DNA of 64,000 nt from Neoconidiobolus thromboides FSU 785 (lineage: Eukaryota; Fungi; Entomophthoromycota). The stretch spans positions 53,038-117,037 of the forward strand of contig MU626310.1 of the NCBI GenBank assembly GCA_025603075.1, read 5' to 3'. The first letter of the stretch is position 1; every line of letters starts with the position of its first letter. The notes beneath the pieces were generated by a model. It worked only from the letters and a program-made list of their open reading frames with translations, had not been told where the DNA came from and searched no databases. Position numbers and translations under genes: made by a program. This document shows positions 16,686 to 19,577 of the stretch, piece after piece.

Positions 16686-16786
16686 TGGAGGTGTTTTTTT
16701 TGACTCTCATCACTTTTTCCATCTTTTAAGCACCATTTAAGCGAAAAAACTGTTAGTAAATTCTTAAACACAAAAACACATCCCCA
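16686..16786 (-). mobile_element. MITE-like copy 7
   Basis: TGGAGGTGTTTTTTTT...AAAAACACATCCCCA. Confidence 0.75.
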
Positions 16787-17080
16787 TTTAATATCATATG
16801 GTTTTAGTAAAAATAGTGAATTTTATATAATAAACAAAATAAAATGAAATAAATAGGAAACCGTTTGATAAAATATCTTAACAATATGTATTGATAAAAG
16901 TTAAGTAAAAGTATAAAGGATAATTATCAACTTTATTGAATCATGTTTATAATGTATGCTACATAAAAATGATTTTATAATAACATGGTAATAGATATCT
17001 AAACTAATATCAATTTATCATTTTAAAGCAACAAAGGATCTCTAGTCATTAACTTATAATTGATATAAACTCATAAGCTT

Positions 17081-18016
17081 TTAGCCCTTTAAAAATCCTT
17101 TAATTCTTTCAAACGGATTAGCTAATATTTCACAAGATTGAGCTTTTGGTAATAAATATTTGTCAAAACAACATTGAAATTGATTTGTGTTATAGCATTG
17201 ATTTTCATTACAAATTTTATTTCCCTTTTCACACAATATTTGATTAACACAATCATATAAATTATTATCATAAGTTCCCTGTTTACATTCATGTTTTTCT
17301 ACATTTACTTTCACTTCAGTAACTAAATTACGAAAGGGAGTATATGGCTTAAATCGAATACTGCTTCCTTTTTCATTATATTCTTGATCACTTAGTACTT
17401 CCACATCAAAACAAGATGTATATTCTTCCCCTTTACCATTATTATCTCGATCAAAATGCCAGACCCAAATTAATTGATAAACTCCTATAGATAAATTCAT
17501 TGGTATGGTATAATTACCAATACAAGGTTTAGGTCCAATTCGATTAAAATAAGTAATATCACTACATTCCCCATCATCAAAAGGTGCTTTTATTAAAGGT
17601 TCGATACCAAACAAATCTTTTCTTTTTAAATACTGAGAACCATCATTTAAATCCCCTAGATATGATTTGCGATTTAAATAAACTGAATAAATATTAGGAT
17701 GAGGTTTAAAATCAGGAGGTAATCGATCTAAATTAACATGCCCATTTTCAAAATAATCAAAATATAAAGTTTGTCCCGACTTTACTTTAGCCATAGGGTA
17801 CTCTGGTTTATAATAAGGCACAGATTGATATTTAGGATCACACAATGGTACTTCAGGACTTCGATCAAGTATTTTATATGTAGATAATAAATCATAATGT
17901 CCTTGAAAATTCCTTATATATCCTCCACAAGAGCCATCCGTTCTTCGGTCTGTACAATCAAGCCAAGAATGTGTGAGGACATTTTTTATTAATAATATTA
18001 AATACAAACTTTTCAT
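17081..18016 (-). CDS. Secreted LPMO-like (His-brace) protein with C-terminal Cys-rich CBM52-like module
   Basis: Signal peptide MKSLYLILLIKNVLT followed by HSW; also ENGHV, FDDGEC, YTIP...GVYQLIWVW, EEYTSCFDVEV, and the tail YDCVNQILCEKGNKICNENQCYNTNQFQCC. Intronless. Confidence 0.65.
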   Translation of the reverse strand: MKSLYLILLIKNVLTHSWLDCTDRRTDGSCGGYIRNFQGHYDLLSTYKILDRSPEVPLCDPKYQSVPYYKPEYPMAKVKSGQTLYFDYFENGHVNLDRLPPDFKPHPNIYSVYLNRKSYLGDLNDGSQYLKRKDLFGIEPLIKAPFDDGECSDITYFNRIGPKPCIGNYTIPMNLSIGVYQLIWVWHFDRDNNGKGEEYTSCFDVEVLSDQEYNEKGSSIRFKPYTPFRNLVTEVKVNVEKHECKQGTYDNNLYDCVNQILCEKGNKICNENQCYNTNQFQCCFDKYLLPKAQSCEILANPFERIKGFLKG

Positions 18017-18486
18017 TTAAATAAAGTAAAGTAAAAGAAAGAAAAAATAACAAGATATATATAATATCAACAGTTAATAAATTACATCAATTAAATTATC
18101 ATAATATTAACAGGTTACTTAGCTCATCAACAGTTTTATTTTATTATCGATTATTTAGTGGTAGTTAAATTATCAAATCTTATCTATTATTATTAAATTG
18201 GCTTGTTGATATTTTTTACAACGTATTTTTAAATTAAACGTATTTTTAAAAATTTCAAGATTAATAGTCTAATTATAGTAAATAATTATTCTAGTGCAAC
18301 TTCAAATTGAACCAATAAGCTTCGTTCAGTTCATTAGCCAATAAAAAGTAGAAATTCTAAATAAGACCAATGGAATAAGGGATCAATTCTATCTTTCTAT
18401 CCCAAAAAAATTGAATTATTTTAAAAATACAATAACAACTTTGAGCTTTGTTTTAAAACAACACTACAATAGAAAATCATATCATC

Positions 18487-19577
18487 ATGTTATTCCAACT
18501 TCAAAGACAGTTGAAATCAGCTTCCATTATCAATTATACTAAATTTATTCGTTCAAGCTATTCTATTAAACCCGATATCAAATTGATCTCTAAAATTCGT
18601 CAAGAAACTGAAGTTAGTATTACTAAAGCCAAAGAATCCTTAATAGCTACCAATAATGATTTAAAGGCTGCATTACAATGGTTAGAGAAGGATTTGATTT
18701 CATCTGGGGCTAAAAAAGCAGCTAAACTAGCGGATAGAGTAGCCAGTGAAGGGTTAATCGGGGTTGCTGTACAAGAGAAAGAAAACAAAATTGTTGCAGC
18801 AATGGCAGAGGTAAGTGAAATTGAATCAATATTAATTTTCTATTAACTTTTTAATATAAATTTAATTAGGTATGTTGTGAAACAGATTTTGTTACTCGTT
18901 CCCCTATGTTCCATCAATTGGTTACTTCGATTTCAGAAACTATAGTTCAAAATCAACTTCTTGAAACCAATTTTAACACTGTTAAAAAATTAAGCCTTGC
19001 TGAGGATACAGTTAAACAACTTTCAGTCAATAATGGAGAAAGTAACGTGAATGAATTGATATCTGAAAATATAGCTAAGTTAGGTGAGAATTTAATATTA
19101 AGAAGAAGTTTAGTTAGTCAATTTGAAATTGAAAATCAAGATAAAGTGTTGGTTGCTACTCATGCTCATAATGGTATTGGTAATAATGGTAAAATTGGAG
19201 GGTATATAGTGATTCGAGTTAAAGGAGATGTGAAGGATCAAGTCAAATTAGATAAAATTAATAAACAATTGGCTAGACACGTAGTGGGTTTAAATCCATT
19301 GTATTTATCTTCAAATGAAGAAGCTGTTATATTAAAGAAGGATTCAATGACTGCTGAAGAATACCAGCAATATTTAAATGAAAATGTATTATTAAATCAA
19401 AACTTTTTATTTAGTAATGGTACTGTTTTAGAATTTCTAAAGAGTATTGAAAAAGAATTGAATATAAAATTAGAAATCTTAACTTATTCTAGATTAATGG
19501 CAGGTGAAGGAGTTGAAAAAGTTGAAACTGTTGATTTTAGAGACGAAGTCATGAAACAAGTGGAAAAATTTAATTAG
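18487..19577 (+). CDS. TSF1: Mitochondrial translation elongation factor Ts
   Basis: IKLISKIRQETEVSITKAKESL (UBA-like), RVASEGLIGV, CCETDFVTR across intron 18811-18869, KLGENLILRR and QLARHVVGLNP. Confidence 0.9.

Follow-up and report, generated by a model that had tools for sequence, protein, structure and literature searches.

Does the minus-strand gene at positions 17081–18016 of the window, the 64-kb stretch of Neoconidiobolus thromboides FSU 785 DNA analysed here, encode a secreted copper oxidase of the lytic polysaccharide monooxygenase (LPMO) kind, and on which polymer might such a protein act? With each of the LPMO families AA14 to AA17, the range of substrates and biological roles known for copper oxidases has become wider. 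A sequence-only reading of this locus had described the product as a histidine-brace protein fused to a CBM52-like module, and had named, as a possible match, DUF7492, a domain that is catalogued so far only as a DUF without an assigned function. The motifs quoted in that reading (HSW, ENGHV, FDDG-C, YTIP, and EEYTSCFDV) are all present in the minus-strand open reading frame, where MKSLYLILLIKNVLT is directly followed by HSW; the strand had been left unnamed in that reading.

The gene, its surroundings and its family

The open reading frame is uninterrupted and intronless, and represents a complete DUF7492 gene of 311 codons with its stop codon at 17081–17083, the end coordinate including this stop. 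The deposited gene call (GCA_025603075.1, contig MU626310.1) is identical to the 311-aa product, which is alignable end to end with the orthologues of Entomophthora muscae and Conidiobolus coronatus. The closest proteins, all named 'hypothetical', belong to E. muscae (51% identity, 97% coverage), C. coronatus (~50% identity), and N. thromboides (45% identity), and a tblastn search within the 64-kb window revealed no paralogues of the 311-aa protein. The window is AT-rich (GC 17–33% in 2-kb windows, mostly 20–32%), and an INTS2-like gene, the mitochondrial EF-Ts gene, and an acyl carrier protein gene are the deposited neighbours on the contig. With regard to expression, the sole trace found over the 2,101 nt compared was an identical 186-nt contig (17431–17616) lying inside the gene, at a depth of 6 in one public run of uncertain type, in which the neighbouring EF-Ts gene reached ~330 and intergenic DNA ~3.

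Two further features of the surroundings were also observed. The mitochondrial EF-Ts gene (18487–19577, plus strand) is interrupted by a short intron, with the open reading frame at 18487–18846 encoding the N-terminal UBA-like domain (PF25025, E 6e-5) and that at 18906–19577 encoding the EF_TS core (PF00889, E 8e-14); the public EF-Ts model looks N-terminally truncated, since the deposited call comprises only the 223-aa second part. Close to this gene, position 18427 marks the start of a run X1 contig, whose loose end there is adapter-like. On the other side, positions 16686–16790 form a short high-copy repeat to which dozens of run X1 contigs align partly before continuing into unrelated sequence, with a summed depth of up to ~5,800, and this repeat is probably a MITE-like element.

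The suggested family name proved correct, as Pfam DUF7492 (PF24320) matched residues 15–216 with 57.3 bits against a gathering cutoff of 27 (E 1.8e-15), and all conserved DUF7492 positions are found in the 311-aa protein. An exhaustive search of 1.84 billion representatives with a profile built from the first homologues recovered 881 representative clusters (50% identity) up to E 1e-3, 71 of them reaching E ≤ 1e-30, indicating, together with the Pfam E value, that the motif pattern is far beyond chance. The 311-aa protein passes the same gathering cutoff as the other members of the Pfam family but differs from them as a divergent member, given its 57 bits compared with the 144–308 bits of Dikarya members, and falls into a tail-bearing subgroup from Zoopagomycota. 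Family members were found in fungi (Zoopagomycota, Taphrinomycotina, Lipomyces, and Pezizomycotina) and in oomycetes, so that DUF7492 spans fungi and stramenopiles. They include proteins of Syncephalis, Saitoella, Taphrina, Lipomyces, Bisporella, Rhizina, and Agyrium, as well as those of the oomycetes Pythium insidiosum and Lagenidium giganteum, and the named members are labelled solely 'hypothetical' or 'DUF7492 domain-containing'. The oomycete proteins (the P0029–P0046 group) display a distinct H-[ST]-W-I-D-C-[IFL]-D-T motif. A literature search for 'DUF7492', with subscription journals outside its coverage, found no paper naming the family; searches with the accessions of the C. coronatus orthologues returned nothing, a search on Entomophthorales and LPMOs returned nothing on DUF7492, one on AA19–21 returned nothing relevant, and the signal-strapping paper dealt with bacterial families only.

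Secretion, fold and the putative copper site

Residues 1–15 (17972–18016, minus strand) constitute a predicted signal peptide, as evidenced by a hydrophobic core with a Kyte–Doolittle 8-residue maximum of 2.76 and by a family census, and cleavage is predicted between T15 and H16, with V at position −3 and T at position −1. The census, carried out in silico, covered the 105 members that begin with Met and whose prepeptide, ahead of the H-x-W motif, is hydrophobic, and His directly followed a canonical (−3, −1) signal-peptidase site in all of them. Residue −1 was A in 64 members, G in 24, S in 13, T in 2, and C in 2, and residue −3 was small or aliphatic throughout (V, A, I, S, T, C, or G; 105/105); position +2 was S or T and position +3 was W in 102/105, and the median prepeptide length was 21. 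The site of the 311-aa protein stands at the rarer end of this distribution, with its T at −1 (2/105) and its short prepeptide of 15 aa. The predicted site fits the classical signal-peptidase rule, suggesting that His16 (codon at 17969–17971, minus strand) is residue 1 of the mature secreted protein, in line with the earlier proposal of cleavage after VLT. This residue, 94% conserved and aligned in the model with His1 of LPMOs, is the proposed first ligand of the brace.

The LPMO-like domain, putatively catalytic, comprises residues 16–210 (17387–17971, minus strand), as delimited by PF24320, the structural model, and the Foldseek and VIA comparisons. The AlphaFold2 model, built on a 130-sequence family alignment (A2), had a mean pLDDT of 87.7 and a pTM of 0.74, with values mostly above 90 in this domain. 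In the Foldseek search against the PDB, the best 50 matches were all LPMOs (AA10, AA9, AA11, and AA16), and the 50 matches listed by VIA-align were likewise all LPMOs (Z 9–11, 137–156 residues aligned, rmsd 2.8–3.7), each starting at residue 1 of the model, matched to mature residue 1 or to the known first His. These results, together with the profile match to AA11 described below, substantiate the LPMO-like fold that had been suspected from the letters. Among the VIA matches, AA15 5msz reached Z 11.0 (151 residues aligned, rmsd 3.0) and the AA11 enzyme AoAA11 (4mah) Z 9.8 (137 residues aligned, rmsd 2.9; AA11 range Z 9.4–9.8), and AA10, AA9, and AA13 gave similar values. The best structural matches came from AA15 and AA10 (TdAA15A 5msz, CBP21 2bem, and CelS2 4oy7), with Z 10–11 over ~145–150 residues and rmsd ~3.0–3.4. 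The copper site of TdAA15A consists of His1, His91, and Tyr184 (PMC5823890), a spacing nearly equal to that of His1, His78, and Tyr184 in the mature 311-aa protein, although AA15 and AA10 show no significant sequence similarity to the 311-aa protein itself. As all AA families tie structurally (Z 9–11), the fold is uninformative on the substrate. Neighbours in the ESM Atlas, compared by features and shape, comprised DUF7492 clusters, Mucoromycota 'lytic polysaccharide monooxygenase' clusters, LPMO_10 clusters, and one BIM1-like cluster.

At the sequence level, the closest link is to AA11. The family profile matched the AA11 sequences 9exj (E 2.2e-9), 4mah (E 9.1e-9), and 7p3u (E 1.5e-6) in the PDB, with weak matches to AA9, and the AA11 alignment is restricted to the C-terminal half (profile positions 149–238); similarity to AA11 over the whole module was not found, the N-terminal half of the family giving no sequence alignment. 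The single 311-aa sequence, compared with AA11, reached merely E 0.03 for 9exj (residues 162–209). It yielded no match to the Pfam models of AA9 (PF03443) and LPMO_10/AA10 (PF03067) even at E ≤ 10, whereas 6 of the 130 relatives matched AA9 (best E 9.4e-8) and 2 of the 130 matched LPMO_10 (best E 5.4e-4) at E ≤ 0.01. DUF7492 is thus linked to AA9, AA10, and AA11, yet the 311-aa protein matches no such model, indicating that it is related to these families without being a member of them. It shares with AA11 (AoAA11 4mah/4mai, AfAA11B 9exj, and 7p3u) secretion in fungi, a mature His1 (predicted here), the LPMO beta sandwich, and homology in the C-terminal half, where G-x-Y-x-L-x-W-x-W and E-x-Y-x-x-C are aligned, including the axial Tyr140. 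It differs from AA11 in another set of disulfides, in the CBM52-like tail, and in the motifs H-S/T-W-x-D-C, N-G-H, and F-D-D-G-x-C, which are specific to DUF7492. AA17 was also considered because of the occurrence of the family in oomycetes, but neither the PDB sequence search nor the list of fold matches contained an AA17 chain, so that an assignment of DUF7492 to AA17 has no support; AA18 is the bacterial CelOCE, which is unrelated to DUF7492.

The residues of the putative copper site are strongly conserved in the family. In the A2 alignment, His16 was conserved at 94%, His93 at 98% (128 members aligned at this position), Tyr199 at 93%, and Glu197 at 71%, and Trp184 (96%), Trp186 (98%), and Pro172 (100%), as well as N91 and G92 beside His93, were likewise conserved. 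The proposed second His of the brace, His93 in E-N-G-H-V (codon at 17738–17740, minus strand), is placed behind a beta strand, a position shared with other LPMOs. The strand E197-E-Y199-T-S-C202-F-D-V205 (17402–17428, minus strand), which had been read from the letters as the carrier of the axial Tyr, indeed aligned with the Tyr140 strand of AoAA11, with E197, Y199, and C202 placed on E138, Y140, and C143 (4mah; profile E 9.1e-9), suggesting that Glu197 may act in the second sphere and Tyr199 as the axial residue. The copper site of AoAA11 itself consists of His1, His60, and Tyr140 (PMC5094447). Further motifs were located at residues 146–151 (FDDGEC) and 168–186 (NYTIP...G-V-Y-Q-L-I-W-V-W). 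Moreover, the cysteines C21–C30, C59–C202, and C151–C165 are gained or lost in pairs across the family, and this paired co-occurrence speaks for an extracellular domain that contains three disulfides. The copper-brace geometry of His16 and His93 is putative.

The cysteine-rich tail

The LPMO-like domain is followed by a linker (residues 211–243; 17288–17386, minus strand) with low pLDDT at mature residues 215–221 and a length that varies among orthologues, by an eight-Cys CBM52-like module (residues 244–295; 17132–17287, minus strand) recognised from PF10645 scores, tail BLASTP, and the model, and by a C-terminal extension of low pLDDT (residues 296–311, beginning E-I-L-A-N-P-F-E-R-I-K; 17084–17131, minus strand), which was defined in the orthologue alignment. 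In this extension, a stretch A-N-P-[FY]-[EK]-R-[IL] past the last Cys is present in three entomophthoralean orthologues and absent from Syncephalis. The cysteines of the module occupy positions 244, 256, 262, 269, 274, 282, 283, and 295. The Cys-rich tail that had been noted from the letters is therefore present with its eight Cys, but the spacing quoted for it was one residue too short, the true pattern being L-C-x-x-G-x-x-x-C.

The likeness of this tail to CBM52, also proposed at the outset, holds at the level of the family and falls short for the tail taken by itself. PF10645 (Carb_bind, i.e., CBM52) scored 9.4–11.9 bits on the tail of the 311-aa protein, under the cutoff of 25, whereas the orthologous tails reached 36.4 bits in Syncephalis plumigaleata (E 6e-9, passing the cutoff), 22.5 in E. 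muscae, and 12.7 in the C. coronatus cluster, with matches spanning nearly the whole 49-position profile. In a tail-to-tail BLASTP comparison with Syncephalis (E 3e-7), 8/8 Cys were in register. Considering the low score of the tail itself and this alignment, the term 'CBM52-like' is justified by transitive homology rather than by the tail of the 311-aa protein alone. In the model, the tail consists of three disulfide-pinned beta hairpins, with a core pLDDT of 80–90. No relative of the tail profile was found by sequence among solved structures (fibrillin EGF, E 1.9), Foldseek with the tail gave no match at E ≤ 0.001, and the best result of a wide VIA search was granulin at Z 2.8, there being no solved CBM52 structure for comparison; two protein-database searches with the tail came back blank, to which little weight is given owing to length and word limits. 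CBM52 binds beta-1,3-glucan and localises Eng1 of Schizosaccharomyces pombe to the septum (PMC6980582). As in Eng1 and other fungal glucan-binding proteins, a small Cys-rich C-terminal module sits here on a secreted, wall-directed protein (as predicted), but it is joined to an LPMO-like domain instead of GH81. Glucan binding by the 311-aa protein's own tail is putative.

Among the best 150 family representatives, the CBM52-like tail is restricted to Zoopagomycota proteins, and other members carry a Ser/Thr/Pro-rich linker together with a hydrophobic end, a different Cys-rich module, or CBM96. The latter (PF24517, best E 2e-24) replaces the CBM52-like tail in P0018, P0102, and one further member of A2, and the other Cys-rich C-terminal modules are of at least two types, one in P0012, P0023, and P0087 and another in P0024, P0025, P0026, and P0091. 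The fusions with CBM52-like modules or CBM96 argue for a carbohydrate-directed role of the family.

What the protein may do

The best explanation overall, with a probability of roughly 0.7, is that the gene encodes a secreted, disulfide-bonded two-module protein composed of an LPMO-like and a CBM52-like module, and the 311-aa protein is probably a histidine-brace copper protein of the LPMO superfamily. In such a protein, signal peptidase would cleave between T15 and H16, making His16 the first mature residue. One copper ion would then be held by His16, through its amino group and its side chain, and by the side chain of His93; Tyr199 would take the axial position and Glu197 would belong to the second sphere, an arrangement known from AA11 and AA9 LPMOs. 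With the copper reduced to Cu(I), H2O2 or O2 would be used to oxidise a glycosidic carbon in an insoluble polysaccharide, and the eight-Cys tail, as a divergent relative of CBM52, would tether the enzyme to a fungal wall that contains beta-1,3-glucan, which could be the wall of the organism itself or of a neighbouring fungus. That the 311-aa protein cleaves a polysaccharide at all, its candidate activity, has slightly less than an even chance. Beta-1,3-glucan and chitin are the obvious substrate candidates by prediction; that the bond cleaved is that of beta-1,3-glucan is doubtful, and we know of no report of an LPMO family that cleaves it. Copper binding and catalysis are inferences, no experimental study of a DUF7492 protein having been found.

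Two features of the family, its conserved arrangement of Tyr and Glu and its fusions with CBMs, speak for catalysis, whereas the GPI-like tails of many relatives and the presence of the family in non-degrading yeasts speak for a role in the wall or in copper handling. The latter evidence could be accommodated by a non-catalytic LPMO-like copper protein of the X325/Bim1 kind, which would capture copper or hand it over at the wall with the tail as an anchor. The 311-aa protein shares the LPMO-like fold and an N-terminal His (predicted here) with X325/Bim1, a BIM1-like cluster occurs among its structural neighbours (TM 0.67–0.71, normalised by the smaller protein), and many DUF7492 members combine Ser/Thr/Pro-rich linkers with the kind of hydrophobic C-terminus that GPI-anchored wall proteins typically have. 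In addition, the family is found in Lipomyces, Taphrina, and Saitoella, yeasts that are not biomass degraders, and a His brace is no guarantee of polysaccharide oxidation (PMC13353379). However, the axial Tyr and second-sphere Glu of DUF7492 are arranged as in catalytic families and aligned with those of catalytic AA11 enzymes, the 311-aa protein has no match to Pfam BIM1-like (PF20238) and ends in the hydrophilic ...ERIKGFLKG instead of a hydrophobic GPI-type terminus, and it carries a CBM-like module in a family with CBM52-like and CBM96 fusions, whereas X325 proteins are described as devoid of CBMs (PMC13353379). A purely copper-handling role for the 311-aa protein is accordingly considered unlikely.

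An AA11-like, chitin-active LPMO, with its tail on the beta-1,3-glucan of wall or septum and its attack directed at neighbouring chitin or at that of insect cuticle, deserves somewhat more credence while still being improbable. The nearest sequence relatives (9exj, 4mah, and 7p3u) are chitin-active AA11 enzymes, the best structural matches include chitin-active AA15 and AA10, and close orthologues occur in insect pathogens or saprobes (Entomophthora and Conidiobolus) and in a mycoparasite (Syncephalis); however, the likeness to AA11 by sequence concerns the C-terminal half only, the structural tie of all AA families (Z 9–11) carries no substrate information, and no chitin-binding module is present in the 311-aa protein. 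The protein might instead bind no metal and serve the wall as a structural or adhesive component that has retained an immunoglobulin-like beta sandwich, a fold that is common, but the near-invariant +1 His, second His, and Tyr across fungi and oomycetes are hard to explain without a metal site, and all listed structural matches are LPMOs rather than generic Ig-like domains, making this very improbable. The two-module, LPMO-like and CBM52-like protein is preferred over all of these. The boldest extension of it, according to which DUF7492 would be a new auxiliary-activity family of true LPMOs whose Zoopagomycota branch, targeted by the CBM52-like module, cleaves wall beta-1,3-glucan oxidatively, is a long shot.

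In summary, DUF7492 is best called an LPMO-like family that is still unclassified and has a distinctive N-terminal motif, and its CBM52-like fusion a previously undescribed one; the 311-aa protein is a promising candidate member of a new LPMO family. The family is large (881 clusters), includes proteins of insect, plant, and animal pathogens, and shows, at the sequence level, every hallmark of a histidine brace, and the CBM52-like fusion provides a concrete substrate hypothesis, namely beta-1,3-glucan walls. If inactive, the 311-aa protein would be a further LPMO-like copper protein with a non-degradative role; if active, it would mean that fungal walls can also be remodelled or attacked oxidatively.
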